Positions 21,292 to 51,900 of a stretch of DNA of 64,000 bases are shown piece after piece. Source of the stretch: Macrostomum lignano. Taxonomy: Eukaryota. The DNA lies in assembly GCA_002269645.1 (NCBI GenBank), contig NIVC01000353.1, positions 1 to 64,000 on the forward strand. Reading direction: 5' to 3'. Both the position numbers and the translations under genes were made by a program. A model generated the notes under the pieces. It saw only the letters and a program-made list of their open reading frames with translations. It was not told the origin of the DNA and ran no database searches. Within the stretch, counting starts at the first letter, position 1. Every line of letters begins with the position of its first letter.

Positions 21292-24200
21292 ATGAGTCAC
21301 GTGATGCTCTCGTACCAGTGGGACAAGCAGGCCCTTGTCAAGAAAGTTTACGAAGCCCTCCAGTCTCAGGGAATCGCCGTGTGGATGGACATCCATGGTG
21401 GAATGAGCGGTAACATCAATGACAGGTATATATATAGCTTAAAAGGCAGCTTTAATTTTAAATATACTCTAATAAGCTACTTACAGTAGGAGAAGTAGTA
21501 TAGTACTGGCATAAAGTAGAAGTATGAGTAGTAGAGCCAAAGCTGTGCATGGAAGAATTTGCATATAAATACAAGGCAACATGATCTAACAATTAAAAAT
21601 TAAATCAAGGCGCTCCAGTTATAATTTAATCCCACGACACTCCCCTAAACTGAAAAGGCACTTCCCTAAACTAAAATGGCACTCTCCTAAACTAAAATGG
21701 CACTCCCCTAAACTGAAAAGGCTCCCCTAAACTGAACTGGCACTCCCCTAAACTGAACTGGCACTCCCCTAAACTGAACTGGCACTCTCCCCAAAACAAC
21801 CACAGCATGGCCGCAGGCGTAGACAACGCAGCGGTGGTATGCCCGTTCATCACTGCCAAGTACCAGGAGTCCAAAAACTGCAAGAAGGAGCTCAACTATG
21901 CCGACGCTCGCGACGTCCCAATCGTGCCGGCCATGGCCGAGCTGAAGTTCAAGGCCACCGGCTGGTTGGGCATCATCACGGCCGGACTGCTCTGGATGGA
22001 CTTCCGACGTGATGAGGCCTTCGACAACAGCATCGTGTCGCTTACTAAAGAAATCATCCACGCTGCCGGAGACAAACTCAAAATTGGCCAGGCCAGTCCA
22101 TCCCAGCCTCCGGCGCTCAAGGTGGATTTGAAGAAGAAACCCGGCCGAGCTTTCAGGCACAGCCAGTTGGGAAAATTTCTGGCCGAATCGGGTGAGTCAG
22201 AGTTAGGGGTGTTAATATTGTTGTAGCATTTATTCAATTAGTTTATAGGCCTCGCTTTCAATTTGGCGCTAGTGCTTCATCGAATTCGCTGGCCCTAATG
22301 TCCGAATTAGTATCTCTAACTGGCGTCAATTGAACCCTAATTGGAGTCTCTAGCACCCTAATTGGCATGCCCTAATGCCCTAATTGACAAACCCTAATAC
22401 CTTAATTGGCAAACTTAAATTGTCCTTTGTTTGCAATCCCTAATACCCTAATACCCTAATCGGCAACCCTAACTCCCTAATCGGTTCAAGTTTATGTTCA
22501 TGCACATGTAAATGACATGATAACGCGCTCGAAGGCATTCCAGATCGTCGGTACATTAACAAGCTACCAAAGAAATGATGACATTTGCACAGCCTTGCAT
22601 ATCAATAAGACGCAAACACCTCTATCATTCCCCCATGCGCAGGCGAGGTGAAGCACCACCAGGCTAGCGGCAGCCGGAGCACCCTGGTGCTGCGAGACAC
22701 GCCCGAGGACACCAGCTACTGGGAGGAGAGCAAGCTGGAGCCCAAGTCTGAGATCCACTACTTCCGCAACTACCAAACTAAGCAGTACCTCGGTGAGTGA
22801 GGCTGAATATGACTCTGCATCACAGTCCCAATCATTATGCGCTCTGATAATCATTATCTCCCTCACTCTGATAATCATTATCTCCCTCACTCTGATAATC
22901 AATATCTCCCTCACTCTGATAATCATTATCTCCCTCACTCTGATAATCAATATCTCCCTCACTCTGATAATCATTATCTCCCCCACTCTGATAATCAATA
23001 TCTCCCTCACTCTGATAATCATTATCTCCCTCACTCTGATAATCAATATCTCCCTCACTCTGATAATCATTATCTCCCTCACTCTGTTAATCAATATCTC
23101 CCTCACTCTGATAATCATTATCTCCCTCACTCTGATAATCAATATCTCCCTCACCCTGATAATCATTATCTCCCTCACTCTGATAATCATTATCTCCCCC
23201 ACTCTGATAATCAATATCTCCCTCACTCTGATAATCATTATCTCCCTCACTCTGATAATCAATATCTCCCTCACTCTGATAATAATTATCTCCCTCACTC
23301 TGATAATCATTATCGCCCTCACTTTGATAATCATTATCGCCCTCACTCTGATAATCATTATCTCCCTCACTCTGATAATCATTATCTCCCCATTTTGATA
23401 ATCATTATCTCCCTCACCCTGATAATCATTATCTTCCCCATTTGGATAATCATCATCTCCCTCATTTTGATAATCATTATCTCCCTCACTCTGATAATCA
23501 TTATCTCCCTCACTCTGACAATCATTATCTCCCCCACTCTGATAATCAATATCTCCCTCACTCTGATAATCATTATCTCCCTCACTCTGATAATCAATAT
23601 CTCCCTCACTCTGATAATCATTATCTCCCTCACTCTGATAATCATTATCTCCCTCACTCTGATAATCATTATCTCCCTCACTCTGATAATCATTATCGCC
23701 CTCACTCTGATAATCATTATCGCCCTCACTCTGATAATCATTATCTCCCTCACTCTGATAATCATTATCTCCCCATTTTGATAATCATTATCTCCCTCAC
23801 CCTGATAATCATTATCTTCCCCATTTGGATAATCATCATCTCCCTCATTTTGATAATCATTATCTCCCTCACTCTGATAATCATTATCTCCCTCACTCTG
23901 ATAATCATTATCTCCCTCACTCTGATAATCATTATCTCCCTCACCCTGATAATCATTATCTTCCCCATTTTGATAATCATTATCTCCCTCACCCTGATAA
24001 TCATTATCTTCCCCATTTGGATAATCATCATCTCCCTCATTTTGATAATCATTATCTCCCTCACTCTGATAATCATTATCTCCCTCACTCTGATAATCAT
24101 TATCTCCCTCACTCTGATAATCATTATCTCCCTCACTCTGATAATCATTATCTCCCTCACTCTGATAATCATTATCTCCCTCACTCTGATAATCACTATC

Positions 24201-25401
24201 TCCCCATTTTGATAATCATTATCTCCCTCACCCTGATAATTATTATTATCTTCCCCATTTGGATAATCATCATCTCCCTCATTTTGATAATCATTATCTC
24301 CCTCACTCTGATAATCATTATCTCCCTCACTCTGATAATCATTATCTCCCTCACTCTGATAATCATTATCTCCCTCACTCTGATAATCATTATCGCCCTC
24401 ACTCTGATAATCATTATCGCCCTCACTCTGATAATCATTATCGCCCTCACTCTGATAATCATTATCTCCCTCACTCTGATAATCATTATCGCCCTCACTC
24501 TGATAATCATTATCTCCCTCACTCTGATAATCATTATCTCCCTCACTCTGATAATCATTATCTCCCCATTTTGATAATCATTATCTCCCTCACCCTGATA
24601 ATCATTATCTTCCCCATTTGGATAATCATCATCTCCCTCATTTTGATAATCATTATCTCCCTCACTCTGATAATCATTATCTCCCTCACTCTGATAATCA
24701 TTATCTCCCTCACTCTGATAATCATTATCTCCCTCACTCTGATAATCATTATCTCCCTCACTCTGATAATCATTATCTCCCTCACTCTGATAATCATTAT
24801 CGCCCTCACTCTGATAATCATTATCGCCCTCACTCTGATAATCATTATCTCCCTCACTCTGATAATCATTATCTCCCTCACTCTGATAATCATTATCTCC
24901 CCATTTTGATAATCATTATCTCCCTCACCCTGATAATCATTATCTTCCCCATTTTGATAATCATTATCTCCCTCACCCTGATAATCATTATCTTCCCCAT
25001 TTGGATAATCATCATCTCCCTCATTTTGATAATCATTATCTCCCTCACTCTGATAATCATTATCTCCCTCACTCTGATAATCATTATCTCCCTCACTCTG
25101 ATAATCATTATCTCCCTCACTCTGATAATCATTATCTCCCTCACTCTGATAATCATTATCTCCCTCACTCTGATAATCACTATCTCCCCCAGGCTACGAC
25201 CCGAACGGTGACTACATCTACACGAAGGGCCAGCACTACGGCGCCGAAGAGTGGCTGCTGATCTCGGACGAGGAGTCCACGGACGGCCGCAGGGCGGTGG
25301 TGATTTTTGCCAAGTTCGGCCAGCGCTACCTGGCTATTAGAAATGGCAAGCTGACCGGCGTGGCCAACAAAGGGCCCGACTGCGTTTGGTACCTGGATTA
25401 A
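21292..25401 (+). CDS. TIR (TIR_2-type) domain + C-terminal beta-trefoil domain protein, 292 aa, 4 coding exons
   Basis: Exons 21292-21425, 21806-22191, 22643-22792 and 25193-25401; all GT-AG, in frame, 879 nt including TAA. N-terminus MSHVMLSYQWDKQ...IAVWMDIHGGMSGNINDSMAAGVDNAAVVCPFITAKYQESKNCKKELNYADARDVPIVP...GWLGIITAGLLWMDF has the TIR_2 signatures. The C-terminus has three about 40-aa repeats (FRHSQLGKFL..YW, FRNYQTKQYL..EEW, IFAKFGQRYL..CVW) typical of beta-trefoils. No transmembrane segment or signal peptide. Confidence 0.85.
21640..21790 (+). repeat. 21-bp minisatellite (GGCACTCCCCTAAACTGAACT, about 7 copies) in TIR gene intron 1
   Basis: Direct tandem copies ending about 15 nt before the acceptor AG at 21804-21805. 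Confidence 0.9.
22333..22480 (+). repeat. Degenerate CCCTAAT(TGG) cluster in TIR gene intron 2
   Basis: About 10 irregularly spaced CCCTAAT-like motifs. Confidence 0.6.
22842..25190 (+). repeat. 24-bp minisatellite (CTCTGATAATCATTATCTCCCTCA, about 97 copies) filling TIR gene intron 3
   Basis: Unit contains the palindrome GATAAT-C-ATTATC. A variant block recurs at about 23387, 23770, 24200, 24563 and 24898. The array runs right up to the acceptor AG at 25191-25192. Confidence 0.97.
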
Positions 25402-28539: not shown

Positions 28540-31500
28540 TCAAAAGTCGTTCTTGCCGGCAAACACGGGATTAGTGACGGTGGTGTTGGGATCTCGATAG
28601 ACCGGATTCTCCCCGGCGCCCCAGGCGGAGTTCTGAGTCTGACTCTTGAATTTGGCGAACTCTCGCCGGTCGGATATCGTGATCAGAGCCTTCCAAATCA
28701 GCAGGATGATGATGCCGACAATTACCACGGCGGCTACTACGATGAGTACGAGAATGAGCGGAGACACCCGGTCGCGGCACTGCTTCTCCTCCTGGATGAA
28801 CAGCGTCATGTTGCGAATAGACCTGCTGCCAATGCTGCCGTCCCCGATGATGTAGCCGTACAAGAGGCTGCACTCGTTGGCCATGTTCAGCACGCAGGTG
28901 CTCTTGTCGTTGATCACCTCGCTTTGGGGAGTCAACTGGATCCTAATTAGGGATGAGCAGGCATGAGACTGTTAATATTAGCTTCTAATGTCACCAATAT
29001 TCTCTAGTCTCACAACTTTTCTCTAGTCTCCAATCTCTCCTAACATCTTCTATCATTGGGTTTACTTTAGTCTTGACCAAGATCTGATCTAATCATATAT
29101 AGTTTCTCTTTTATCTGATTTAAATTATCTCTAGTCTAATCTACTCGTAGATACTCTAATCTCATTTTCTAGGTTCTCTTCTAATCTCATCTCGTAAATT
29201 GTGTGTCTAATATCATTTTCTAGATTCTTTAATCTCATCTTCTAGATTATCTCAAATTTCATTTTCTAGATTCTCTCTAATCTTATCTCCTAGATTCTCT
29301 CTAATCTCATTGCCTAGATTCTCTCTAATCTCATCTCTTAGATTCTCTCAAATTTTATTTCCTAAATTGTCTAGTCTCATCTCCTAGTCTTTTTATCTTA
29401 TAGATTGTCTAATCTAATCCTATATTATTCTCAATAATAACGAACAGAAGCCAGAGACACCCACTTGCTAGCGTCAATCCAGACGCCCTCCTCAACCAGG
29501 CTGCAGTTGCACTGGGTCTGCCGGTCCTCGGGCGCCAGTTTCCGATGATTGAACACGCACTCAACGCATCGGCGGAGGCCTTCGTCGTTGCACAGGCTGC
29601 CAGTTGATCCAGCCTTGGTGTCGCAGTGCGGATCAGAGGACCACAGGGCTTCGCAGACGCATCGGCCGCAGATGCAGGTGCCGTGATTTGAGCACTGCAT
29701 ATCTTTGTATTGCTCTTTCTTAGAATGACAGTCGGGTTTGAGCTTGTTAGCGTCTGAGCATGAACAGTCTTTCTCAGAGTAGCCAGGCTTGCAAATGCAC
29801 GTCCTTTTGCCGTCGCATTCGCCTCGACTGGGCCCGCCGCAGGGCTCCTTGGTGTCCCAGGAGTCCGGGCAGGACAGCTTGTCCAGTTCGCACAGTTTGC
29901 CATAGTAATTGTCCTTGTAGCACACGCATTTGTTGCACACGCACCGGCCGTTCTTGCTGCAAATATTCGATACGTCGCCGGAGTGGCACTGGTCAACCTG
30001 GGACCCGGTCTGGGCGTCGCATTGGCACGAGTCGCCGCTGTAGTTGCCATGGCAACTGCATACTCCGCACTCCAGGTGGCTGGGTTGGAAAGAAAAAACA
30101 TTGATCGTTATTTTATTTAAAACATTGATAGCTCTTTTCTCTCTAATCTACTCTTTAATCTTCTATCTCCTCTCTCTTCTCCCCCTCTCTCTCCTCTCCT
30201 CTCTCCTCTTTCTTCTGTTCTCCCTCTCTCCTCTTCCTTCTCTTCTCCCTTATCTTCTCCCTCTCTCATCTCCTTTCTCTTCTCTCTCTCTCCTCTCTCT
30301 TCTCTTCTCCTACTCTCATCTCCTTTCTCTTCTCCCTCTCTCCTCTCCCTTCTCTTCTCCTTTCTCTTCTCCCTCTCTCCGCTCCCTTCTCTTCTCCCAA
30401 TCTCATCTCCTTTCTCTTCTCCCTCTCTCCGCTCCCTTCTCTTCTCCCAATCTCATCTCCTTTCTCTTCTCCCTCTCTCCGCTCCCTTCTCTTCTCTTCT
30501 CCCACTCTCATCTCCTTTCTCTTCTCCCTCTCTCCTTTCTCTTCTCCCTCTCTCCTCTTCCTGCTCTTCTCCCTCTATCATCTTCCTTCTCTCCTCTCCC
30601 TGCTCTTCTCCCACTCTCATCTCCCTTCTCTTCTCCTTCTCTTATCTCCCTTCTCTGCTCCCTCTCTCATCCCCTTTCTCTTCTCCCTCTCTCCGCCCCC
30701 TTCTCTTCTCCCACTCTCATCTCTTTTCTCTTGTAAGGTCATCCAAAAAGTGCTAGCGACTCCGAGAATTTCGTACAGCCAAGTACAGCGCTGGCTAACT
30801 AAAGCTCTGAGGGATGACGCAATCAAAACAGTAGAACTCACCCGACATTCTGACACTTCGGCACCTTCTGCAGAGGATTAGCTTTGGCCTCGCACTCCGG
30901 ACAATTGCACAGCGATTTAATTCGAACTTCCATTCGATCGTCAGAAGTTGTTGACGCGAAATGTACAATCTCTTCTGGCCGGGGCAGGCACTTGGTGAGG
31001 GTGACGGTGGCCCTGTAGGACACGGTAGCTCCTAGCGGCACTCGGTGACACCTGTTGCCCAATTTGAAATCGGTCTCGCCGGGGCATCGAACCTCGGACG
31101 TGATGTTCAACCATAGGCCAGGATCGTTAGCCCGAATCTCAACAGTCTCAGCAATGGATCGATAATTCTTTTTAATCAATTCCAATACGTTATCGTTAGT
31201 GACCAGATCGACTTCAGTCACCACTGGCAGGGCGTGCTTCAGTTGCATGTACAGAGGCGTGTAGCTGTCAGATTTCAAGGCGAATATTACTGACACCTTG
31301 GCGTCGGAGAGCACCTTGGCAACTTGCCCAATTGATGGATAGTCAAATCTGAAGTTTTATCAATTAATTATTATCAGTAAAGAAAATCCCCCCTTGACAA
31401 TTTTTTTGCTGCGCCGTATTGGAGCAACGCAGGCACACGAAGTTCAAGAACACGGGCAAAGTTTTTGTTGCGCACCTTCTCAAACAAGAATCAAGTCGCC

Positions 31501-34500
31501 AGCCCTCTGGACCGTCGAGATATTCGACGATTCTGCCGAAAGTTCGGATTTTTCCCATAAGCGCCAGTGTATTCAGTACACCCCTGTGCGCCAATTAGCA
31601 CTGCGCCTCAGTGCAGCCTTGCCAAGCCTCCAAATTTTATCAGCAACTTGAAAACGTTACTGACTTCTTTGGTCACTGGCCTTCACCCAGATGGAGCTTC
31701 TGGACCTTCAACAGATGACACCAGGTGACTATGAACACCCTGATAAGAATTTCTCTAGTTTCGCCGATCAAGCCTCGACAGTGGAAAACCTCAACTGCTA
31801 GGTATCCTCAGCTGGTCTCTCGAGCATTCCGTCATCACCCCGTCGGTACTTTCAACAGATGACACCAGATGACTATGGACATCCTTTTGCGAAAATATGT
31901 CAGATTTTTCTTATCAAGCTTCAATAATGGGCAAGCCTCAACCGCCGGAAATCCTCAGCTAGTATCTCAAGCATTCAGTCATCACTCGGACGCCGTCATC
32001 CCCCCTCTTGGTAGTTCTACTGTTAAAAACCATTTTTCAAGTAGTTTTTTCTATAAGAAACCTAAACTAAAGATATCCCGTGTGGCCATCCGATCAGGTT
32101 TTTCGCCCGGTTTTGCTCTGGCTTGCTATGTTTTTTGCCCCATTTCCAGGCGAAGAACATAAACCAGGCGAATTTATCCGGTTTTTCTCTGCCTTTCTAA
32201 ACCAGGCGAAATTCCGGAGGAAAAACCGTACGAGTGCTCTGGTTTTTTACCCGGTCCTTCGCCAGGTTTGGAACCAGTTTAGTAACGCAGGCAAATCCGG
32301 AGTAAAAGCGGATGAAATAACAATTCCGCCTGGAATTTTGCCCGGTTCTTTCTCTGGTTCTTCGACCGGACAAGAGCCGGAGAAAAGAGCTGATGAAAGC
32401 CTTTAATTCAGGATTGGGTTGAAAATGGTATGGGAGACACAGTGTATAATTGACAATTGACATGAAGATTTTCTTGTAATTGTATGTCCTGTAATGTGCT
32501 CCTGTTTTGTTCTCTTGCAGTATTTTTTCCGCTCATCTTTATATATACCATATGAGCGTCTTCGTATGTTACATTACGAGCGTAGTTCACGTAAACTGAG
32601 AATAAAAATATGTCATTTTAATGCTGTCATCGCACACATTTCTGAAGGCTGCATGCTACTTGGGGATTCCAACATACTTTTGGCCAGTCAGAAGTGATTT
32701 TAAATTCCCGCATTTATGCGCCTAGATGACTAGCGACTATGCGCCTACTGACTGTATTCTAAAACATCTTTGGAATCAAAAAAACAGAGGAGTATATTGA
32801 TCTTGTAGGTGATTTGGAACAGTTTGATGAATTGCAAGATGGAACGTTACATATTTTGTATTAACACTGACAATTGTCTTACTTCTTCACTCTTCACGGT
32901 ATCCGTTGACAGAAGCGCACTGTAGATGTTTTACTAAGTCGGCACTACATATTTCCGAGAGTAGACACCATTTGATAGGGATGCAGGGTTTTTCGTCCGG
33001 TTTGATCGTCGTGTCGCTTTCGTTAGGTTTTAGTCTGATTTTGCCCCGGTTATTTGCCGGGTTCTGCTATTGCACTTTCATCCGGTCATTTGTCGGGTTT
33101 TATTCAGGGTACTCATCAGTTTGAGTAGCCGAAGAGAAACCCGAGAAAATACCTGATGTCCTCTACGAAATTCCTGACGAACAACCAGACGAAACTGCCG
33201 TCTTCGTCCGTTTTCGAGACCACTTTCCCGAGGATTTTCGGGTTTTTAGATAGGAAAAAATGTATTACAAACCGGGCAAAAATCCCGATCGCCTACCGGG
33301 CGAAAAACCTGATCAGATGGCCACACGGGATACAGGAGTCACAGCAGAAATATCACGACAGAGTGAACTAACCACTAGCTCCTAACTCGCTCACTCACTC
33401 ACTTCTCACTCACTCACTCACTCACTTCTCACTCCTCACTCACTCACTCATTCACTTCTCACTCATTCATTTCTCACTCACTCACTTCTCACTCACTCAC
33501 TTCTCACTCCTCACTCACTCACTTCTCACTCCTCACTCACTCACTTCTCACTCACTCACTCACTTCTCACTCCTCACTTATTCACTTATCACTCCTCACT
33601 CACTCACTCCTCACTCATTCACTTCTCACTCCTCACTCACTCACTTCTCACTCCTCACTCACTCACTTCTCACTCCTCACTTATTCACTACTCACTCCTC
33701 TCTCACTCACTTCTCACTCACTCACTCACTTCTCACTCACTCACTTCTCACTCCTCACTTATTCACTTATCACTCCTCACTCACTCACTCCTCACTCATT
33801 CACTTCTCACTCCTCACTCACTCACTTCTCACTCCTCACTCATTCACTACTTGCTCCTCACTCATTCACTACTCACTCCTCTCTCACTCACTTCTCACTC
33901 ACTCACTTCTCACTCCTCACTCACTCACTTCTCACTCATTCACTTCTCACTCCTCATTCACTCACTTCTCACTCCTCACTCACTCACTTCTCACTCCTCA
34001 CTCATTCACTACTTGCTCCTCACTCATTCACTACTCACTCCTCTCTCACTCACTTCTCACTCCTCTCTCACTCACTTCTCACTCCTCACTCACTCACTTC
34101 TCACTCCTCACTCATTCACTACTTGCTCCTCACTCATTCACTACTCACTCCTCTCTCACTCACTTCTCACTCCTCACTCACTCACTTCTCATTCCTCACT
34201 CACTCACTTCTCACTCCTCATTCACTCACTTCTCACTCCTCACTCATTCACTACTTGCTCCTCACTCATTCACTACTCACTCCTCTCTCACTCACTTCTC
34301 ACTCCTCTCTCACTCACTTCTCACTCCTCACTCACTCACTTCTCATTCCTCACTCACTTCTCACTCCTCACTCACTTCTCACTCCTCACTCACTCACTTC
34401 TCACTCCTCACTCACTCACTTCTCACTCATTCACTTCTCACTCCTCACTCACTCACTTCTCACTTCTCACTCCTCACTCACTCACTTCTCACTCCTTACT

Positions 34501-37500
34501 CATTCACTACTTGCTCCTCACTCATTCACTTATAACTCCTCACTCATTCACTCCTCACTCATTCACTCCACAACTCATTCACACCTCCCACAATCACTCC
34601 TCATTCACTCACGCCTCACTCAGTTGAGTATTAACTAACCGCTGCCAAGTTACAAAAAACATCTTTAACGCACCTGGTGGCATTGACGTACTCCAGACTG
34701 CCAGTAACATTCAGTTTATTTCTACCCGTCTCCAGGTGACACTGCGACTCGGGAAACGGTTCGATAATGCCGCCAAACCGGCCGTCGCCAGCCATGTGAA
34801 AGCCGCCATCAATAGCCAGCAGGACCACTTTGCGAGAATTCGATCGCCAACCAATTTGTGAGCGGCAGATCACCGCCTGCAGTAGGGCGTCTAGGGAGCC
34901 TTCGGGAGCGTCCAGGTTGGCCGAGATGGTCTTGGCCGCTGTGACCTAATGTGGGTATAAAAAGGCACAAATGAAGGGTACAAATAAAGGTTAAAGAGTC
35001 GGGGGAAAGGTAGCACAGGTACAAATAAAGGTTAAAGAGTCGGGGGAAAGGTAGCACAGGTACAAATGAAGGCTAAAGAGTCTGGCAAAGGTAGCACAGG
35101 TACAAATGAAGGTTAAAGAGTCAGGCAAAGGTGGCACCGGTACAAATGAAGGTTAAATAGCCGGGCAAAGGTAGCTTCGGTACAAATAAAGGTTAAAGAG
35201 TCGGGGGAAAGGTAGCACAGGTACAAATGAAGGTTAAAGAGTCTGGCAAAGGTAGCACCGGTACAAATAAAGGTTAAAGAGTCGGGGAAGGGTAGCACAG
35301 GTACAAATGAAGGTTAAAGAGTCGGGGGAAAGGTAGCACCGGTACAAATGAAGGTTAAAGAGTCTGGAAAAGGTAGCACCGGTACAAATGAAGGTTAAAG
35401 AGTCTGGCAAGGGTAGCACCGGTACAAATGAAGGTTAAAGAGTCGGGCAAAGGTAGCACCGGTACAAATAAAGGTTAAAGAGTCGGGGAAGGGTAGCACA
35501 GGTACAAATGAAGGTTAAAGAGTCGGGGGAAAGGTAGCACCGGTACAAATGAAGGTTAAAGAGTCTGGCAAAGGTAGCACCGGTACAAATGAAGGTTAAA
35601 GAGTCTGGCAAAGGTAGCACCGGTACAAATAAAGGTTAAAGAGTCGGGGAAGGGTAGCACAGGTACAAATGAAGGTTAAAGAGTCGGGGGAAAGGTAGCA
35701 CCGGTACAAATGAAGGTTAAAGAGTCGGGCAAAGGTAGCACCGGTACAAATGAAGGTTAAAGAGTCGGGCAAAGGTAGCACCGGTACAAATGAAGGTTAA
35801 AGAGTCGGGCAAAGGTAGCAGCGGTACAAATGAAGGTTAAAGAGTCGGGCAAAGGTAGCACCGGTACAAAAGAAGGTTAAAGAGTCGGGCAAAGGTAGCA
35901 CCTGTACAAATGAAGGTTAAAGAGTCGGAAAAGGGCAGCACCGGTACAAAGGTCACAAAGTCAGAGCGCGTCGTAATTAGGGTAAGTAGAGTACAAATAA
36001 AGGTTAAATTATCGAGCGACGGTACAAATGAAAGTTAAAAGTATGGGAGGGTAGCATAGCATTTATATAGCTCATCCAAAGGTAATAACGCTACATATCG
36101 GTATATAATAAGGTGAAGATTTACTTCTTTAAGCTCGGCGACATTCTGGCTCAAATCCATAGCGTGAATATAGCTGAAGGTGTCGATACAACGTTCGCCG
36201 AAGCCCAAAGAGTCGCAGGGCGCAGCAGACGGATTCGGCTGCACGTAGGGGAACACTGGCTTGTCGACAAAGAATCCGACCCCGATACGCCAGTTGCGAG
36301 TCAGCTCGCCCAGAGTCTGCTGAATCTTCTCGGACATGTTGGCTACGGACTGTAGAAAGTCTCGCATACTGTGACTCTTGTCGGACAGGATGTACATGTC
36401 CACCGGGTAGTTTTCGGCTTGCTTAAATTCGAACTCCAGTTGGATTGAATGATGAGTTCGGGCCCATACGCTCACGTTTTGAGGCTTGATTTGGTTGCTA
36501 TCGCTCAGCGGGTTGTCGAGCATGATCTGGGAATGTGCAGAAGGACAGGGGTGATAAATCTTCATTTGCGAGCTTCTGGCCCTTATCTAGAGTTCTGCCG
36601 TAGCTATAGAAACGGCTATGGGAAGTTACGGATATGGTTATGGGAACATAACTGAATGAATATAGCTACATAAATGCAATCCCCGAGAGATTGTTCTAGT
36701 ACAATAAATAAGTGAGACTTTATTTAAGATTATTTATTTACTTTCTCACGATATTATAGTGCATGATGGAAGAACATTTGCTATTGCCATTGAACAGTTG
36801 CCTTCTGTAAGTGGGGCTGTGGGATGCAGTGTGGGGGCTCAGTCAGACATGCTCTGATGATGTACTCCGTGCCTTGGAGCCCCAGATTAATGTGGCTCAG
36901 AATCGAAGACGGCGACTTTGGTGCGAGAGTGCGACGCGACGGGTTGTGACCCACTATATAGGGCTGGGTGTGACCGGATTAAGGAGCCACGTGTGACAGG
37001 CTGTGACCCATTATTAAGGGCCAGGTGTGACAGATTGTGACTCACTAAAGGAGCCAGGAGTGAAAAGTTGTGACTCACCATGAGGAGCCAGGCGGAATAG
37101 TTGTGATCCAGGGATCCAGGACCCAGGGTTGAGAGGTTGTGATCAACTTTTAAGGGCCAGGTGTGACCGGGTTGTGATCGACTATTAAGGGCCAGGTGTG
37201 ACCCACTATAAAAAGCTAGATGTGACAGGTTGTGACTCAATAAAGAGCCAGATTTGACAGGTTGTGACCCAATAAGGACCCGGATGTGACAGGTTGTAAC
37301 CCAATAAGGAGCCAGATGTGACAGGTTGTGACTCAATAAAGAGCCAGATGTGACAGGTTGTGACCCATTATAAAGAGCCAGATGTGACAGGTTGTGACCC
37401 ACTATAAATAGCCAGGTGTGACAGGTTGTGACTCAATACGAGCCAGATGTGACAGGTTGTGACCCACTATAAATAGCCAGGTGTGACAGGTTGTGACCCA

Positions 37501-37990
37501 CTATAAAGACTAAAGAGCCAGATGTGACAGGTTGTGACTCAATAAGGAGCCAGATGTGACAGATTGTGACTCAATAAAGAGCCAGATGTGACAGGTTGTG
37601 GTCCTATATAGAGCCGGATGTGATTGGGTTGCAAGTCTGCATGAAGACCATTGATCCGTATCCATCTATAATTGACCAATAAAGACAGTCTAAGGCTACC
37701 AAGATTGAGTAAAAGTACATTTCTTCCCTCACCTCAGCGCGACTAACTGGCGACTCCATGAGAATGCAGCCGCGGTCCCTAAGCTCGGCCTTAGTGCCGC
37801 ACCTGTGCTGAGGCCCAATGCGACTGTCATCAAATGATTCGTCTGTGCACCAGGCGCAGGAGCTGTGCAATTTGATGCAGGCCGAACAGCTGGTTGGCGG
37901 AATGCCCACAGAGCAGGGCGAGATGGAGGACACTATAGTGACAGTGGCAGAGCATAGCAGTGCCAGAAATAGTGATTTGGGAAGTAGCAT
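28540..37990 (-). CDS. Integrin beta subunit, 818 aa, 6 coding exons
   Basis: Exons (minus strand) 37990-37733, 36526-36125, 34945-34674, 31348-30842, 30079-29465 and 28942-28540; all GT-AG with matching phases, 2457 nt. Signal peptide; PSI domain (CSACIKLHSSCAWC); beta-I domain with MIDAS DKSHS, GFFVDKP, NLDAPEG and DYPSIGQ; four Cys-rich I-EGF modules; beta-tail; TM helix; cytoplasmic tail KALITISDRREFAKF with NPVY and NPVF motifs. Not assignable to a vertebrate paralog by eye. Confidence 0.95.
29000..29420. repeat. Degenerate about 20-bp repeat (TCTAGATTCTCTCTAATCTCA-like) in integrin intron 5
   Basis: Repeated CTAGATTCTCT/AATCTCAT motifs, with the best copies at 29265-29350. Confidence 0.7.
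30135..30732. repeat. CT-rich (polypyrimidine/polypurine) low-complexity repeat in integrin intron 4
   Basis: Almost only C/T on the plus strand, with semi-periodic TCTCATCTCCTTTCTCTTCTCCC. Confidence 0.9.
31707..31995. repeat. Diverged 144-bp tandem duplication in integrin intron 3
   Basis: TTCAACAGATGACACCAG(G/A)TGACTATG at 31707 and 31851; the downstream CCTCAAC..ATCCTCAGCT..AGCATTC.GTCATCAC motif is also duplicated. Confidence 0.65.
32077..33329. mobile_element. 1253-bp non-autonomous DNA transposon with 35-bp TIRs and a 2-bp TSD
   Basis: Left TIR CCCGTGTGGCCATCCGATCAGGTTTTTCGCCCGGT (32077-32111) versus right 33295-33329, 34/35 identical. Flanked by AT/AT (or TA/TA if the TIR is extended by one base). 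No transposase ORF. Confidence 0.85.
33386..34620. repeat. (CACT)n-derived compound microsatellite in integrin intron 3
   Basis: CTCACTCACTCACTTCTCACTC variants over 1.2 kb. Source of the spurious LLTHSL ORFs. Confidence 0.95.
34965..35950. repeat. 40/41-bp minisatellite (GGTACAAATGAAGGTTAAAGAGTCGGGCAAAGGTAGCACC), about 24 copies, in integrin intron 2
   Basis: Period 40 at 35701-35900. Begins about 20 nt from the exon 3 acceptor. Confidence 0.95.
36980..37625. repeat. 32-34-bp minisatellite (GAGCCAGATGTGACAGGTTGTGACTCAATAAA) in integrin intron 1
   Basis: Period 32 at 37321/37353, degenerating leftwards. Confidence 0.9.
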
Positions 37991-38310
37991 GATTGTTTTT
38001 AGTAGCTGGAAAAGTTTATGAATCATTTTTAAATTAGTTTTTTCTACTTTTATTTTACAAAACGTTTGGGAGATGGAATTTTTTTGTTTTTGTTGTCAAA
38101 TTTATTTTTTTTATTTTTAGTAATTTTTATTTAAATACATTTTTTATTTTCTTAATAATTTGATTAAGTCAGGAACATTTAAAACATGGAAACTTCGAAC
38201 TCACAACAAATTTTTCACACACTCAATTTAAAAATCCCCGACGCCACTCTTCTATAGTCCCTAAAAACAAAATTACCACTATAAAAATTATATACAGTGA
38301 TAATAATATA

Positions 38311-42974: not shown

Positions 42975-45900
42975 ATGGCTGTCTCATTGCCAGTAACCTT
43001 CGAGCCTCAATCAGCCATGAGTCTCAGCAGCTTGGTAACATCCATCGAATATAAAACTGGCGCTCTCTACGATGGTGACGTTAGCGATCAGGCCAAGCAG
43101 GGAACCGGGGTTTTCACTTGGCCTAATGGTGACACGTACTCCGGCGAGTTTTCCAATGACAAGAGAAATGGCAAAGGTATTCTGGTATTCTGGGTCGGAA
43201 TGTTTGATTGTTATTTCATTGTTTTGACTGATTGTTAAAACGTAAACAACTTCAGGTGAACAAGTTTGGTACGATGGAGACCGCTACAATGGCGAATATG
43301 TCGACGACATGAGACACGGATTCGGCGAATACACCTGGAATAACGGAGAGGTAAGAATTAAAACTGACAGTGCGAGATAATTACTCAATTAAAAAATATA
43401 GACTACTAAATCGGATTGACAGCAAAAGAAGAAAAAAGCTTTTTGCTCCCAGCCTTGCACACTAGTCACAGGGACCTCCAATCTGCACCTCTGTAGCTGG
43501 CGCCCCTCTGTAGCTGGCATCCCCCTCTGTAGCTGGTACCATTTAGAACATTTAGAACATTCATATTTAGCATATCGTATTTAGTGCAGTCTTTCGCGTA
43601 GAAAAGATCGATGGGCAATTCTCGTCCACCGAAATTTAGAAAATTGTTTAAAATTATAATTTTTATCTCCATGCAGCGCTACATCGGTCAGTTCTACAAA
43701 GACCACCGGCACGGGCCGGGTCAGTACACCTGGGCAGATGGCAGTAGTTTCGTCGGTACCTACTACATGGATCGCAAAGAAGGCTACGGAACGTTTTTCT
43801 ACGCCAATGGCGACAAATTCGATGGTCTCTACCAAGCTGACGAGCGCGAAGGCCCCGGCGTGATGACTTATGCCGATGGTAGCCAGGACGTCGGACTGTG
43901 GCATCGAGAGCGACTATCCAGACTGCTGACTGAGGTTCCTGACACGTTCAGCCTGGGCAACCACCCAGAGCTCGACTACGATCCCAGCCGTGGCAAAGTT
44001 CAACTGCCTGCCGAGGGTCGACCGGATCCGCAGCTCGACGCCTTCCTAGAGGCGATCGTCAATCCACCACCCGAGTGGACGTACGACCCGGCCGCTGCGC
44101 AGCGCGTCAAGTCACGTCTGGACGGCGAAGTGCTCACTGGCAGCCGACCGGACAGCGCTGCTTTTAACAGAAAGGACTCCGACGTGAACTTTCGACGCTC
44201 GGCTGGTCTACGGGAAGACGCCGAGCACACGGATGAGGCTGACGCGGCCGGGAAGGAGACTCCGGCGGCGGAAACTGAGCAGCAGGATGCCTCATCTTTG
44301 CCACCGTCGAGCAATCAGTCTCCAACGCATCAGCAGCATCAACACAGGGCGTCACCGAAAAAGGCAGGCGGTAGCAGCCCTAGCAGGTGAGGAGGATGCT
44401 GATAAATTTGGTTTGATTTGGTTTGGTTTTGTTTGATAGAATCACTCGTGAGGCTTCTGACTTGATTTTCAAGCAAGGGAGAAGCTAACGAGATCGAAGA
44501 AATATTATCTTTTTGTGTCCTCCGCCACAGGAGTCCGAAGCGCGGCTCGCCCAGTCGGAGGCCGCAGCCGACCGTTAAGCCGGCGAAGCGAGGCGGCCGC
44601 TCCACTGTTGAAACGCCCAACGAGTCGTCGAACAGCCCAACGGCCGACGCGGAAGCCGCAGCCAAGAAGTCTCAAACAGTGGACGCTTGGAATCCTACAC
44701 CGGCCAGCGTGGCGATGCAACTCCACGTGATTCGGTTTCGACAGTTGCAGTCACGAGCCGGATTCGATGTGGATGCAGTTCTACGAGCCGATCGGAGTGG
44801 CTTTTGCCAACAGGTACAAAATATTTTTAATGGGCAAACTTTTAAACGTTGACCTACTTGATTTTTGGATAAAGGCTATGCCAACCGCAGCCGAAAGTAA
44901 AACTGAAAAACTGCAAACTGCACTGTAGTCGATAATTTGCTTGAAAAGGTGGATAGAAACCCTGAGACATTTCATCCAGATCCCTCTTAGAATCCCAGGA
45001 GAATTTTCTATTACAGTTGGTCTGCCTCAGCTCAACTCTAGAGCATTCATTTATGAGTAGCTTGCACACATTCGACGCATCCCCAGACTTTGATTCTGTG
45101 CGCGGCCTTATTCATTTGGGGCTTGTGCGCAAAAATTCGCCGGCGTGTAGTCGTGCGTCCCTACTTACAGTACCCACCCACGTATAGGTGCACAACGGAA
45201 CAGACAGAATTGCGTCAGCGCTGGTTGTAGGACAATGTCACTGAAAGCGTTGCACCAGGGTACCTAAAACCCTGAATATTTATTCTTGGCATAGTTTAAG
45301 AAACTTACTTTGCGGAGCCTCAGAGAATTCCATTGCATAGCTAATATAATTCGCAACACCAGGGCCCATTGGAGCGTCGCTCGGTAGAGCTGATCGAAGC
45401 CGCCAAGTCTGGCGACCTCGCTGCGGTGCGCGGCTTATTGTCCAGCGGCGACGTCGATCCCAATGTGTCTGACAGTCTGGGCAAAACTCCACTTCTCTGC
45501 GCCAGCGTCAACTGGCACCGACAGGTGGTCGATTACCTGCTGGACGCCGGTGCGGACGTCAATCGGCTTAGCGACGAAGGCGTCTCCTGTTTAGCTGCTT
45601 GCTTCGTTCACTACTATCCGAGCGACAAGTTTCAGCGGAACATTGCTGAGAGTCCGGTAAGAAGCATGTTTTCGTGCAAGTTATGTCTATAGTCATGGGA
45701 ATGTCGAGAAATCAACAATTGCTTTCCTGGAAACTAACTATACCGCTAACTTGAACTTAAATTTCTGCCAAACGAGCGAATTTCGTTGCATTTTTTCGAG
45801 TTTTTTAACACCAAATTGGCAACATTTCCTTTTGAAATTAAAAAAGACCAGTTTGTTTTGTCGGAGATTTTCAAGTCGGAAGATTTGGAGGGGAGATGTT

Positions 45901-48900
45901 GGCAATATTTTGCTTAAAAACGGAAAACGTCTCATCTAGCTAATTTACTCGGACTTTTTAGCGAAAACTACGATTTTCAAGCTCAATTCATGTCCGGGGG
46001 CACGTCTATCGCGTAAAAAATATATACTGTTTAGAAATTCATCCCTATGTTGCTACGTTGAAAAAATAACAATATTACTGTTTCCCAAAAAAATTCGTTT
46101 AGGTGAAGCGCCTCACTGAAGAAGAGCAGAAAGCCGCTAGGAAGGCAGCGGCTAAAGCCGCCGCCGCTGCCGCCGCTGCCGCCTCGACTGCCGCAGCTCA
46201 TCGCAAGCCGGGCGCTCTGCCGCCAGTTGCTGAAGGCAAACCTGGCGAAGCCGCCGGACGACCGGGAGCCTCATCCGACCGACTAACCGACCCCGTTGTT
46301 GGCCGCGGTGGCCGATTTGCCGGGACGCTAACCGGGGCAAGACGACCGGACTTTGGGGCAGCAGCCGCGACCCGGCCCGGCCGGTTCCAGCGTAGCTGGT
46401 CGGTCAGCGACGACGACGACGATGACGACGATGACAATGGAGATTCAAATTCTGGCGCCCGCGGTGGCCAACCGAAGCAGGACGATGCCGTTGAGTTGGC
46501 CAGCGCCGTCAGCGTTGGTTCAGCTTCGCCCAGACCGTCGGAAGATTTTGAAAGCACCGATTCGCTGGCTAATTACAAAATCACCGTGCCGGAGGAGCTG
46601 GTCAGGCGGGCCGCCACGGCGCTAAGCAGCAATCAGATGGTGGCCAGTCGCGTCGCGTCATCCATGGTGACCCGCACGGCGCCGCAGCCGCCTGGCGGGG
46701 GAGATGAAAATTTGGAATCCGGCGGACAGGAGGGCAGGACAAGAGAGCTGGCTGCCCATATGGCTAAGTAAGTTTATTAACAGTAGCATGTCGTGCCTTT
46801 TTATGAGATATGAAATTGCAGCAGAAATTCCATCGCTACTACATAGAACGGGTAGTAATCGAAAATTGTGACCATTAACCGATGTAACCTGCTCCTTGTG
46901 AAGACCTAATAGGCGTCTCACTGATTTTTACAAAAATGGTCAAATATGGACAATTCTTGATCAAACGGTTTTTACCTACTTTTTGGCACCTTTTGCATCA
47001 GTCGGTGATTTGATGATCGACTTAGTTGACGGCGGTCAAAGAGCTTCGAAATGTGTATGTATATGATTGGAAACCACTTAAACACTGCAGGCACAAGCTG
47101 ATGTCAGACACCGTCCACCTGCTCCTTGAACGCGGCGCCGACCCGAACGCATCTGCCGTCCCCTTTCCCGCCCTGTTCTTCGCGGTGAAGTCCGGCGACG
47201 TTGACATGACTCGCCAATTGCTGCTTCGCGGAGCCGACGTCCGTGCTCGTCTGGAGGCGTCGCGCGGCGGCTTAACGGCGCTGCACATTGCCGTCGCGCT
47301 GCCGGGCGAGCCGAGCGTCACCATCACGGAGCTGCTGCTGCACAGCCTGGCGTATCCTGACGCCCGAGCTGTGCTGGACGATTCCTTTCTCGATCGAACT
47401 ATGGAAGAGGATTGGTCGCGCGACGAGATCACGGACGAGCAGAAAATGCTTCTTGGCGGTAGGACTCCGCTGCAGATTGCTGCTTCGAGAGAGGATGAGC
47501 ACCGGGTGAGACTGGGGCCTCGGATTGGTAAATTTTTATCATAATTGCTATTGAAGATTGTTACAGGGGAAGGGTAGCTCAATGAGGGTATGCATGGATC
47601 GGGATTATCTGCTTGCCTCCTCGGCTGCGGATGGATCGTCGCCTCGATTTGCGTTGGTCAGCTCAAAACTTTGCTTGACTAAAACATAAAACGTGAATCA
47701 ATAAAAACTGTTACTATTTTCTTGCCCGAGGAACCAACGAAACCAAAATTGTTAAGGTAAAATTCTAATTTTTTCATTGATAAATCAAAATTAAGTAAGT
47801 GGCTTAGTCATCGTATTATTCTCTACTTCATATTATGTCACTCATTGTCATCACCGACCTGCATCTAAGCCGTGCACCATTCAGTGTTCAAAGTCAATGC
47901 ATAACAGAAACACAAACGCCCACAACGCGTTCTTCACTTCACATGTTTTATTGACTTGTAATAACCTCAGCGTAGCAACAAAGTATCAGCGTCGAGTCCA
48001 AATTCTTACCAAATAATTTCTCTGAATTTTCAGCGAGCCCACCAAATTGTTCGCCTATTGCTGGAACACAAGGCCAATCCCAATCTGCTTTGCAACGGAA
48101 ATAATGCTCTGACGCTGGCTGTTCAAAGCGGAAATGACGCAGTGAGTTCCCGTTGGTTTTAGCGCTATTGATCAACAAAGTCAATCATGAATCTTTAAAT
48201 CTTAAATCGTTAAGCAAGCAATCAAAGAAACTTACAAGATACGTAAAGTTTTAGCACCGCACAATGTTGAGTAGGACGAAAATTACTCCGTCATGAATAA
48301 TGCCTAGAGAGCATCCGTGTCCTTGTCAATTTAAAAATTCATAGTCCATTTCACTCTGAACTGAACACTTCGTTTCCCGCACACTTGTTTTTTGAATTAG
48401 TAATGATCCCCACATGTGATTCCCAGCTGCACTGACCTACGGGTTGAGCTAATTATACTTGTCTATTTACTAATTAAATCATGCAACTAATTTATCCGAT
48501 AAACAAACCGATAGTCACTGACCTGATGCATAAATCTGTAGCAACTCCGTCCCAAGCATGGCAGCGTCAGCACGATTCGGGAGCTTCTGGACTTTAATCG
48601 ACGCTTAGCCATGCTGGAGCCTCAAACTCTGATGCTCTCGGCAGCAGAGGGAAAAGCTCAGCAAAGTGCAACTTACAGTCCCAGACTGCAAGATGGCTCG
48701 GTCGATGACCATGTTTCGTCGAGAACCGATCCAGCAGATCTGATTGCTAATTTCATCGATAAGATGGACACACCCGAGATGGACAGTGTTCGTTAAAAGA
48801 TCACTCGCTACTTTATGAATAATTGCCAACGACACCATTAAACTGCACAATATTTATTATTCGTGTCTACTATATCACCCGCGTATATCAAACAATAGCT

Positions 48901-51900
48901 GCAAATATGTTCTGGTATCAGGACATCTCGAGACACTCTATGTTATTACCAAGGTCTTAATTATTACGAGCGAAATTACACAAGACAAAACCTAAAGTTA
49001 CACACTCACTTCAATTTACCGGTTTTTGGTCTTCAAACACAATTTATATTACTTCGGATTCACGTGCTACTCGAATTTAAATGAATTCACAATAATCACT
49101 TTAAAGCTCTATTCCATCACGTGCATGACAACACGGTAAACTAATTTTGATAAAGTAAATTTCACCAAACTTTTGCTAAACTTCAGGCCATAGACGAGCT
49201 GCTAGCCCACAATGCCAACGTCAACTTGGCTTTGTCTCACGGTGTCGGCAGTGCCCTCTGCGCAGCCTCCAACATCGCCTACGAGGATAAACGCCAACTT
49301 AGAGGCCGCCTGGATCTAGTGAGCGCTTGGGATACATTGAAAACCTTCACTGCTACTCCTGAAATACCTAACTAAACACTGTTTAGCCCCATTTTAGAAT
49401 CTAACCATTAGTTTCTAACCACCCATCAACTTCAGATCGACAAGCTCATGGACGCCGGCGCGGACATACTGCAGCCAATAGCCATTGGTGTCAAACGACA
49501 GCTTGGCACGGCTGTAGACTACGGATGGCAGTCCTACTACCTGGACAAGCGCGTAGCCTTCTCTCCCTACCATGCTCTCAACCCGGTTGAACGTCAAGCC
49601 TTCCAAGATCGCAACGTCGTGCTGAAGCATCTCAGCAATCGACTTCGCGAGAAGGCGGTAGAACGAGAACGGCGCCGGCTTGAAGAAGAAGAAGCTGACG
49701 GCGTTGTCAGTGAGTTCAATCGTCAGTTTTGTTTATTTGTTTGCTCGGAAATTTCAGAGTTCCAGACTTCTATCTAGGTCGGACACCAGCATGGGCTATA
49801 GAAGCACGCTGTGGCCTTGTGGGCATAATAAAATTCTAGAAAGTTCTAGGAAATTCTAGGAAACTACCACAGACAGTCTCGATTAATAGATTAATACGCT
49901 CGTAGAGCTTTCATCAAACCTGCAAAGGCTAACTCATTTTTGAGATTAAGTACTCTTACTTTTATCCAACCTTTCATTAAACTATATATGCAGCAAGCAT
50001 GTACTATTCAATTTTTAGATCACGAGAAAATCAAGGGTGAAGCAGAATTTTGCTGTAATATTTTCTCCTTGTTTACATATAAATGCTATGGTTTTCGTAG
50101 ATACACTGTACTACATCCTATTTCGTTGAGCTATGAGTTGAGCAAACTGTTTTTGTTATTCTGATTTTTGTTAAAAGGGTCTTTCATCTTCATAGTCACG
50201 TATTTCTCTGAGTCTTTAACTTTCCTTTTCATCCAAGATATTTTTGTTTGAATTTGAATTGAATTTAAATATCATAGATTCTCTAAGCGCGCCAATTTGA
50301 ATTGATCAATTTAAAGTAAGCAGACTAAAAAACAAATATTCTCTTTGACAACTTTCAAGGCCGCGGGCCGAGCGAGAATTTTGTGTACACTGGTGCGGGC
50401 GCTTCAATGCCGGGCACGCGCGACTCCGGTGACGAGTTTCTTCGTCAGCAGGAAGTCATCGTCCGGTGAGTTCTTCTCCTTCTGCTACTATAAGTAGGAT
50501 AATTCAAACATTCGGAAAACTAGTTTGGATTGTCAAGCGATTCACACCCTTGAAGACTAACTCCAAGTCACAGATAGTGTACATGCTGGACGATTAGAAA
50601 GTCTAGGCCGCTGTACACTTGTGTGAGCATCTGTGCATGCTCAGGTAACAGCGGAGTGCGTGATTCATAGGAGCTGCGTTTGCCAACACAATAACTGAAA
50701 AACCGAAAATTATTATTTAATTTCAGATTTAAAACCAGAAAAGAAAGGTTTGTATTATTAGTTAGAGCAATTTAGATTTTCTACTTATAATTTGTTATCT
50801 AAACTGTTTCAGCTTCAGTTTAAAAGCATCATTGTCAGTGTCTTCTTTTAGAAGCGCGGAGCGCTATTTCTTGAATAGCTAGACTAGACATAATCTATCA
50901 GTATTACTGCATCAATTCTTGCCAGAGTAGTATGATGCTTTTGTTTGTTTCAGAAATAGTAGCTTAGGCGAATATTTTTTATGTAAAAAATGGGGTTTGA
51001 CTGTTTGACTCTTATTTTAGTTCTTGGCTCAGTTATTGCTGTGTGGAAGCACTCCTTATGTTTGTCCTTGTTTATTAAAGATTATTTGAGAGGGCTTGTT
51101 TAATGGACCATCGAGGTTCTTGAGAATTTTTTAAGCCCAGTTTTTCACGCTGATGTCAGAATGTCTCTCTCTTCATTGGCTCTGATGTCAGAATGTCTCT
51201 CTCTCTTCATTGGTTCTGATGTCAGACTGTCTCTCTTTCTTCATTGGTTCTGATGTCAGACTGTCTCTCTTTCTTCATTGGCTCTGATGTCAGAATGTCT
51301 CTCTCTTTCTTCATTGGCTCTGATGTCAGAATGTCTCTCTCTTTCTTCATTGGCTCTGATGTCAGAATGTCTCTCTCTTTCTTCATTGGCTCTGATGTCA
51401 GACTGTCTCTCTCTTTCTTCATTGGCTCTGATGTCAGAATGTCTCTCTCCATCGGCTCTGATGTCAGACTGTCTCTCTCTCTTCATTGGTTCTGATGTCA
51501 GACTGTCTCTCTCCATCGGTTCTGATATTAGACTTTCCATTTTTTCCATTGTCTTTCCATTAGACTTTACATAATCTTCATCTCCTTGAATACATTAACC
51601 ATGAGTATCTGGCTGAAAAGACACGTAACCATCAAGAGAATCCCTCCACGACACAGGCGTCCAATTTTCAAGTACTGCTACGACTGCGGCCGATCAGTAG
51701 GCGTACGGTTGACTCCGTGCACTCGCTGCAAAGAGGTCTACTTCTGCGGCAAGGCCTGCAAAGTGCGCGCCTGGAACGACCGGCACAAAGACGAATGCCA
51801 ACGTGTTGGCGGCGGCGCCGGGGCCGCAGGTCGGAAAACCGACGCCAGTCGAATCGACAGTCCGACTCCGGCTACTGACGCGGACAGAGGCTTGAGCAAG

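Follow-up and report, generated by a model that had tools for sequence, protein, structure and literature searches.

The locus at positions 21292-25401 of the forward strand of contig NIVC01000353.1, from the flatworm Macrostomum lignano, raises the question of what a TIR domain does when it is joined to a beta-trefoil in a compact two-domain protein. Catalytic TIR domains are central to the immunity of bacteria and plants and, through SARM1, to axon death in animals. The stretch of DNA analysed, referred to here as the window, comprises the first 64,000 nucleotides (nt) of the contig. The answer favoured here, with a confidence slightly above an even balance, is that the gene encodes a soluble TIR enzyme that cleaves nicotinamide adenine dinucleotide (NAD+), and that this enzyme is regulated or targeted by the attached trefoil, which would recognize an invariant ligand.

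The gene is composed of four exons on the plus strand, which join to form 879 nt that encode 292 amino acids (aa) and a TAA stop codon, and all three introns begin with GT and end with AG. Exon 1 (21292-21425), with its ATG at 21292, encodes aa 1-44 and the first two nt of codon 45, ending at a GT donor at 21426; it holds the start of the TIR domain, with strand beta-A (MLSYQW), and is supported by tblastn. Exon 2 (21806-22191) provides the remainder of the TIR domain (to approximately aa 135, nt 22076), the linker rich in Pro and Lys (22077-22142), and, from G158 (nt 22143) onward, the strands with which the trefoil begins. The end of trefoil subdomain alpha and the start of subdomain beta, including W200, are encoded by exon 3 (22643-22792; aa 174-223), while exon 4 (25193-25401; aa 224-292 and the TAA) provides the rest of subdomain beta and the whole of subdomain gamma, including W244 and W289.

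Intron 1 (21426-21805; 380 nt) interrupts codon 45 in phase 2, intron 2 (22192-22642; 451 nt) lies in phase 1 at codon 174, and intron 3 (22793-25192; 2400 nt) in phase 1 at codon 224. Intron 3 is almost wholly occupied by a minisatellite of 24 base pairs (bp), with the unit CTCTGATAATCATTATCTCCCTCA repeated 97.9 times (22842-25188), which splits the coding sequence in such a way that no single listed open reading frame (ORF) spans the gene. Intron 1 contains a tandem repeat of 21 bp x 7.6 (21638-21795). In intron 2, eleven CCCTAA hexamers (the complement of the telomere-type unit TTAGGG) are found within degenerate CCCTAAT(T)GG repeats, in comparison with a window average of approximately one per kilobase (kb), and short tandem repeats account for much of all three introns.

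The exons of the Nematostella vectensis orthologue (L001) were reconstructed for comparison, and each of the three flatworm introns has an exact counterpart there, in both position and phase (Nematostella introns 1, 4, and 5, respectively). The common sites are codon 45 in phase 2 (N[DG]SMA), the Gly of AE[ST]G[EQ]V in phase 1, and the Gly of YLGYDP in phase 1; the Nematostella orthologue has two introns more. This agreement supports both the gene model and the vertical inheritance of the gene since the cnidarian-bilaterian ancestor.

The product is 100% identical to the M. lignano entry A0A1I8GCP2 of UniProt/UniRef, denominated “TIR domain-containing protein”. These 292 aa recur, with identical junctions, in GenBank PAA46663.1/PAA84925.1 (BOX15_Mlig013557g1, “5' partial”), in which ten additional N-terminal residues represent read-in of the 5' untranslated region, matching the window upstream of the ATG. 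The GenBank annotation of this assembly was derived from a genome-guided assembly of RNA-seq data (transcriptome), with ORFs called by TransDecoder (PMC5730564), and the presence of the identical protein in an RNA-seq-derived annotation thus supports the spliced mRNA at the transcript level. The initial annotation of the window, made from the sequence alone, had described just this product, spliced from four exons and hidden from the ORF list by a minisatellite intron, and the splicing on which it depended is that of the GenBank model.

A tblastn search with the product matched only these four exons, and neither a further copy nor a pseudogene was found in the 64-kb window. Several near-identical or partial copies are carried by the M. 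lignano genome. One entry from another locus (P0080; UniRef A0A1I8F900, 195 aa) appears garbled and frame-shifted, with stretches identical to the window protein interrupted by unrelated sequence, and its name, “EamA domain-containing protein”, appears to be wrong. It is probably either a duplicated copy in a partly duplicated genome or an error of assembly or annotation.

The TIR domain is readily recognized. The Pfam scan of the protein assigned aa 4-118 to TIR_2 (E = 4.2e-20; 72.9 bits, the cut-off being 28), and a canonical TIR fold occupies aa 3-135 in the AlphaFold2 model of the whole protein. Modelled alone, the domain reached a predicted local distance difference test score (pLDDT) of 88.4, and the evidence places it in the TIR fold, which is defined by a five-stranded parallel sheet with flanking helices. 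Its Foldseek matches in the PDB included Hydra TRR-2, RPS4 and RUN1 of plants, SPARTA TIR-APAZ, and SARM1, with template modelling (TM) scores of 0.7-0.8 at 13-18% identity. The superposition on SARM1 (9mw2_A) gave TM scores of 0.76/0.80 and a root-mean-square deviation of 2.2 Å, and the family TIR profile recovered the NADases Cat1 (E = 1.8e-6) and SARM1 (E = 1e-3) from the PDB. The region of the BB-loop (aa ~33-45) is present, with a low pLDDT.

The residue on which catalysis would depend, E73, is located in helix alpha-C, within the motif SKNCKKELNYA, and is encoded by a GAG codon at 21888-21890. It aligns with the catalytic E642 of SARM1 in both HMMER and hhalign, and is invariant in an alignment of 36 orthologues. 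The initial annotation was therefore correct in reading a TIR_2-type domain at the N-terminus and an intact glutamate at the catalytic position.

The activity of related domains is described by Hurieva et al. 2026 (Sorek laboratory; bioRxiv 10.64898/2026.04.20.719644), in a preprint for which 154 eukaryotic TIR domains were expressed in E. coli, and NAD+ and the isomers of cyclic ADP-ribose (cADPR) were measured. Its Table S4 was searched with the family motifs, and two entries, rows 145 and 146, matched. The first of these, from the coelacanth Latimeria chalumnae (H2ZXV5; 296 aa, TIR 3-140, Glu74), is listed as active, with NAD+ depleted and no cyclic isomer, and is singled out in the text of the preprint, while the second, from the herring Clupea harengus (A0A6P8EVF3; 236 aa, Glu74), is listed as active and as producing cADPR. 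Glu74, which corresponds to E73 of the window protein, is given as catalytic in both cases. Mutation of the catalytic Glu is stated in general terms to have abolished activity in the active TIRs, and the parts of Table S4 consulted contain no Glu-mutant row for the two fish domains. Neither the main text nor the supplementary parts consulted mention a trefoil, or any C-terminal domain, in the fish entries.

The two fish proteins share with the window protein the motifs “MLSYQW...NCKKELNYAD...WLGLITAGLLW” and the glutamate at position 73/74, and the window TIR is 58% identical to that of Latimeria and 60% identical to that of Clupea. Given the activity of these family members and this level of identity, the enzymatic reading is well supported by homology, and the window protein is most likely an NAD+ glycohydrolase or ADP-ribosyl cyclase. 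The NAD+ turnover predicted in the initial annotation is borne out to this extent, by way of the two fish relatives. The total length of the coelacanth protein is comparable to that of the flatworm protein, whereas the herring model is a truncated form. The latter resembles a number of teleost models of approximately 237 aa (P0084, P0202, and others), which end a few residues past “YLG”, exactly at the conserved phase-1 site of intron 3. These models reflect read-through or a missed last exon in the annotation, or else, possibly, a genuine isoform of this length in which the trefoil is incomplete.

The nature of the C-terminal half was approached through structure prediction. The AlphaFold2 model of the whole protein, based on the 36-orthologue alignment, has a mean pLDDT of 90.3 and a predicted TM score (pTM) of 0.87. 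A linker of lower pLDDT (aa ~136-157) is followed by the twelve beta-strands of a trefoil (aa 159-291), and the top 50 PDB matches of the full model in Foldseek are nearly all beta-trefoils (E ~4e-7; target TM 0.77-0.85). The neighbours of this fold include the FGF-1-derived Symfoil, the mussel lectin SeviL, FGF-1, actinohivin, and the BEL lectin. These matches identify the C-terminus as a beta-trefoil, into which residues ~158-292 fold in the model. The pTM of the two-domain model hints, in addition, at a defined packing of the domains against each other.

At the sequence level, this module is an orphan. The C-terminal 135 aa have no Pfam match even at E <= 10, and a phmmer search of the PDB with the whole protein returned only chance matches to antibody V domains and weak matches to SeviL and Cat1. 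The trefoil family profile recovered SeviL alone from the PDB (E = 0.03); WW-domain-like matches (Prp40) to this profile were judged spurious or low-complexity. Sub-threshold Pfam matches to FGF were obtained in nine of 25 orthologues (best E = 0.029), and to RicinB_lectin_2 in six of the 25 (best E = 0.043). The window protein itself has neither the (QxW)3 signature of the R-type lectins nor a match to the Ricin_B_lectin or RicinB_lectin_2 profiles. One Trp is retained in each subdomain (W200, W244, and W289, at a spacing of 44-45 residues), without the ricin-type Gln. The Fascin profile matches neither the window protein nor any of the 25 orthologues, and the trefoil is single rather than in tandem. 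Membership of the FGF/IL-1 cytokines is likewise not indicated, the identity to the fold neighbours FGF-1 and Symfoil being 12-18%, and the trefoil lies behind a TIR domain. The view that it is an orphan module resembling a degenerate R-type or SeviL-like lectin fold is strongly supported.

Apart from the one Trp in each, pairwise alignment reveals no significant similarity among the three subdomains (z < 1), which indicates that the three-fold symmetry is structural. The three-fold trefoil proposed in the initial annotation is thus sustained as a fold, confirmed by the predicted structure, and not as a symmetry of sequence, and, of the profile families it had suggested for scanning, TIR_2 was recovered, while the Fascin and ricin-B families produced nothing above threshold. 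The Pro/Lys linker that it described is present, as is the absence of transmembrane, LRR, ARM, and SAM regions, given that Pfam finds no domain other than TIR_2 in the window protein and no transmembrane-like hydrophobic stretch is present (maximum KD19 = 1.07). Read from these features, the protein is, with strong support, a predicted soluble, cytosolic, two-domain enzyme.

Full-length orthologues of 285-303 aa, which are 45-69% identical over ~100% of the length and bear no annotation beyond “uncharacterized” or “TIR domain-containing”, were found in a range of animals. They include anthozoan and scyphozoan cnidarians (Nematostella, Exaiptasia, Porites, Oculina, Desmophyllum, Rhopilema, and Sanderia), the annelids Owenia and Dimorphilus, the nemertean Tubulanus, the acoel Convolutriloba, and many teleosts. 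Between the flatworm and the cnidarians, the identity is 63-69%. The TIR domain and the trefoil are equally conserved (mean column identity of 62% each), and the segment that enters the trefoil, KKPGRAFRH, is also conserved. In the percomorph fishes, the otherwise near-invariant motif of subdomain beta, YLGYDPNGDYxYTKxQHYGAEEW, is present in a relaxed version, which marks it as a candidate functional surface. The polar residues that are invariant in the trefoil include R159, H163, R185, D226, E242/E243, and R257. Most species contributed one match to the homologue search, with no lineage expansions seen.

The trefoil is largely confined to this family. An exhaustive comparison of its profile with 1.84e9 representative proteins produced just 78 matches, nearly all of which appear, by their length and the stretch matched, to be family members or exon-sized fragments; ten of the 78 were scanned against Pfam. 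It is therefore strongly supported that the trefoil occurs almost only fused behind this TIR, as judged from these sequences. Variants include a more divergent form of 344 aa (P0125), with TIR_2, the trefoil, and an N-terminal hydrophobic segment read from the sequence, and a TIR plus trefoil protein with a large insertion (P0155). At least two long multi-stretch matches (P0136 and P0137) were set aside as unrelated proteins with spurious or low-complexity similarity.

The unicellular filasterean Pigoraptor chileana (EukProt EP01137) contributed a full-length TIR-trefoil orthologue of 295 aa, 60% identical (P0026), and a paralogue (P0113) that carries the trefoil behind an N-terminus with weak similarity to SAM (SAM_PNT, E = 0.12). 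If these entries are not contamination, the family may predate the animals. Neither the homologue search nor the trefoil profile search brought up any member from the tetrapods, arthropods, nematodes, molluscs, or echinoderms.

From this pattern, a mechanism may be proposed. The trefoil would serve as a regulatory or targeting module that binds a ligand, and this binding would determine where and when the TIR domains self-associate into an active oligomer, by analogy with other TIR enzymes. The output would be a local loss of NAD+, signalling of the cADPR type, or both. The strong purifying selection on both domains, together with the single match in most species, suggests that the ligand would be invariant, that is, a conserved endogenous glycan, metabolite, partner, or damage signal, rather than a fast-evolving pathogen molecule. 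The acoel Convolutriloba macropyga still has the gene; TLR, MyD88, and IRAK have reportedly disappeared from the acoels (PMC12849515), and flatworms are reported to lack TIRs of the Toll-like receptor (TLR) type (PMC7075850). This suggests that the protein would act independently of TLR signalling. The physiological context may be immunity, cell death or stress, or Ca2+/NAD+ signalling.

A number of points weigh against this proposal. The oligomerization, and the part of the trefoil in it, are purely inferential. The activity data come from a preprint, and refer to isolated fish TIR domains overexpressed in E. coli, with the two orthologues giving different products, NAD+ depletion in one case and cADPR in the other. 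A trefoil in coelacanth H2ZXV5 is presumed from its total length of 296 aa, the available database sequence being a fragment of 139 aa. The trefoil of the closest relatives outside the family, found in bdelloid rotifers, is not detectably homologous to that of the window protein (hhalign probability of 0.2%). The glycan-binding residues of SeviL (F21, R26, D28, F32, Y37, D38, and D39) lie outside the aligned segment, which means that lectin activity cannot be transferred to the window trefoil.

Among the alternatives, the possibility that survives best, although it is unlikely on balance, is that of a pathogen-sensing immune module, along the lines of the initial annotation, in which a cytosolic lectin trefoil recognizes microbial or exposed host glycans, and multivalent binding clusters the TIR, leading to NAD+ depletion or cell death, or to an immune second messenger. 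The lectins found among the neighbours of the trefoil, such as SeviL, BEL, actinohivin, and ricin-B-like proteins, are in line with this, as are the rotifer relatives, which join the same TIR to a canonical ricin-B lectin. TIR enzymes serve as immune effectors in bacteria and plants, cADPR is produced by many animal TIRs (bioRxiv 10.64898/2026.04.20.719644), and the patchy distribution of the family, given its absence from the tetrapod, arthropod, nematode, and mollusc matches, resembles that of accessory or immune genes. The high flatworm-cnidarian identity, the single match in most species, and the absence of expansions are, however, atypical of receptors engaged in an arms race, while the persistence of the gene in an acoel that lost Toll/MyD88 signalling and the sub-threshold level of the lectin motifs also argue against an immune role of this type.

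Slightly less probable is a physiological enzyme that produces cADPR or ADPR for Ca2+ or NAD+ homeostasis, with the trefoil providing subcellular targeting or a structural cap. The conservation of the domains and introns since before the cnidarian-bilaterian split, and possibly since before the metazoans, is of the housekeeping kind, the cADPR made by the herring TIR is the canonical Ca2+-mobilizing messenger, and the high pTM is suggestive of two domains held in a fixed unit. A core housekeeping gene would not be expected to have been lost from many large clades, however, and the coelacanth TIR depleted NAD+ without forming cyclic products.

A broader proposal, equally tentative, is that the family represents a second, SARM1-independent pathway of TIR NADases or cyclases, of ancient origin (from before the metazoans to the coelacanth), in which the trefoil would sense a conserved cytosolic cue, such as glycans on damaged endomembranes, a nucleotide, or some other metabolite. 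The trefoil would then switch the TIR from an autoinhibited monomer to an active oligomer, resulting in the formation of cADPR or the collapse of NAD+. As part of this proposal, the loss of the pathway in the tetrapods, ecdysozoans, and molluscs would explain why it has gone unnoticed.

It is improbable that the protein is a non-enzymatic adaptor or scaffold, which would act through TIR-TIR contacts, with the conserved Glu in a structural role. The TIRs of animals are classically adaptors, Foldseek also matches the TIRs of MyD88, MAL, and TLRs, and the best structural match, Hydra TRR-2, is a receptor TIR; yet the related fish TIRs are catalytically active, E73 is invariant, and the family survives both in an acoel devoid of TLR, MyD88, and IRAK and in flatworms, from which TLR-type TIRs are reportedly missing. 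Pfam finds no death domain or MyD88-like adaptor module in the protein, which does not, then, belong with the Toll adaptors.

That splicing does not unite the four exons in the living animal, or that the C-terminal exons belong to another gene, is scarcely credible, for while the size and repeat content of intron 3 and the existence of models of lesser length (PAA81851.1, with 247 aa, and the fish models that end at the intron-3 site) could be taken in this sense, the splice sites are canonical and the reading frame exact, two independent annotations, one of them derived from RNA-seq, give the identical protein, full-length collinear orthologues exist, some on contigs of ~1 kb that are too short for such introns (inferred transcripts), Nematostella shares the intron positions and phases, and the completion of the trefoil in the AlphaFold2 model requires all of the exons.

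The remainder of the window is of a different character. Positions 1-21000 are a mosaic of repeated blocks of 0.8-2 kb, mutually 77-97% identical, with a pronounced positive GC skew of up to +0.58 and internal periodicities of ~30, 80, and 141 bp. The long ORFs of this region are low-complexity, either rich in Ser and Leu (minus strand) or in Glu and Arg (plus strand), and no recognizable gene was seen there. A gene for an integrin beta subunit occupies 28540-38026 on the minus strand, with exons that match PSI_integrin, the Integrin_beta VWA domain, EGF_integrin, and Integrin_b_cyt, and with introns filled by minisatellites (for example, 30166-30712, 33385-34622, 34977-35950, and 36978-37623). 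Exons encoding MORN repeats, ankyrin repeats, and zf-MYND, at 43611-52092 on the plus strand, probably represent a single ANKMY1-like gene.

A tandem series of ORFs follows at 58014-62442 on the plus strand, each with a Cys/Trp-rich module of ~130 aa after Thr/Pro-rich linkers. The first ORF begins with a hydrophobic leader, two of the copies (58745-59173 and 61413-61898) match almost perfectly for most of their extent, and only one ORF has a weak, sub-threshold match to Lectin_C (E = 0.0014). This neighbourhood, with its integrin beta gene, its MORN/ANK/zf-MYND gene, and its weakly lectin-like ORFs, is uninformative on function in a eukaryote.

The overall verdict is that the locus belongs to a real, catalogued, and essentially uncharacterized family, which represents an architectural variant of the catalytic TIR proteins. 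The initial annotation had not recognized the architecture as a characterized animal family, and this was essentially right, except that the protein is already present in UniProt and GenBank, and that members of the family have had their TIR domain assayed. Accession and locus identifiers led to no papers when searched in the literature, and the fusion to a trefoil is unmentioned in the TIR surveys PMC7075850 and PMC13142454 (the TIR atlas). In the literature searched, the features that appear to be undescribed are the orphan trefoil and its near-exclusive link to this TIR, the depth and strength of the conservation, including the shared introns, and the possible filasterean origin.

Many more animal TIRs have been argued to be enzymes, and have been treated largely as isolated domains (bioRxiv 10.64898/2026.04.20.719644). 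The present locus shows that one active TIR clade takes the form of a compact two-domain protein, in which the trefoil is as conserved as the TIR. It thus offers a small, soluble, and tractable system for the study of how a sensor domain gates an animal TIR, and of cADPR production and NAD+ loss outside neurons. The ligand of the trefoil, if identified, would define a new input into the NAD+-based signalling of animals. RNA interference can be used in M. lignano, and for Nematostella and the teleosts there are genetic tools. Transgenesis is also established in M. lignano (PMC5730564).

The comparison with known systems places the protein among a number of TIR enzymes of differing architecture. 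The Arabidopsis protein PP2-A5 is similarly a soluble TIR with the catalytic Glu and a fused carbohydrate-binding module, although its PP2 domain is a beta-sandwich rather than a trefoil, and BdTIR is a soluble TIR enzyme with the catalytic Glu which differs in having no carbohydrate-binding module. These plant TIRs form a separate clade, with 2'cADPR or pRib-AMP-type signals, and common descent of the fusion with that of the window protein is unsupported.

SARM1 shares with the window protein the condition of a deeply conserved animal TIR NADase, the alpha-C Glu (E642, equivalent to E73), and the logic of a regulatory domain combined with a TIR. The identity between the two TIRs is only ~16-18%, however, and SARM1 has an ARM domain and tandem SAM domains followed by a C-terminal TIR, whereas the TIR of the window protein is N-terminal and followed by a trefoil, which separates it from the SARM1 family in architecture. 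The regulatory domain of SARM1 binds nicotinamide mononucleotide (NMN) and NAD+, while its putative counterpart here is a trefoil.

For the trefoil itself, the mussel lectin SeviL (PDB 6lf1/6lf2) is comparable in its ~130 aa, its weak internal repeats, and the equivalent Trp in each subdomain. One Trp per subdomain is described by its authors as the hallmark of SeviL, a degenerate R-type lectin (PMC7744527). SeviL differs in that it stands alone, with no enzyme domain, and the similarity of its sequence to the window trefoil is sub-threshold.

The closest TIRs outside the family are those of the bdelloid rotifers Adineta and Rotaria (P0093-P0098), in proteins of 311-336 aa, with a TIR that is 50% identical to that of the window protein and retains the Glu. 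These proteins present the same order and size, with an N-terminal TIR, an acidic linker, and a C-terminal beta-trefoil, although the trefoil is a canonical, highly symmetric (QxW)3 ricin-B lectin, above the Pfam threshold. The idea that they are divergent orthologues with the same trefoil was dropped in view of the hhalign probability given above. They support the logic of the architecture, not a lectin function in the flatworm protein. As read from these sequences, the design of a TIR with a C-terminal trefoil recurs, whether by replacement or by extreme divergence. This recurrence hints, by analogy with the rotifer lectins, at carbohydrate recognition, and supports a functional coupling between the two domains.

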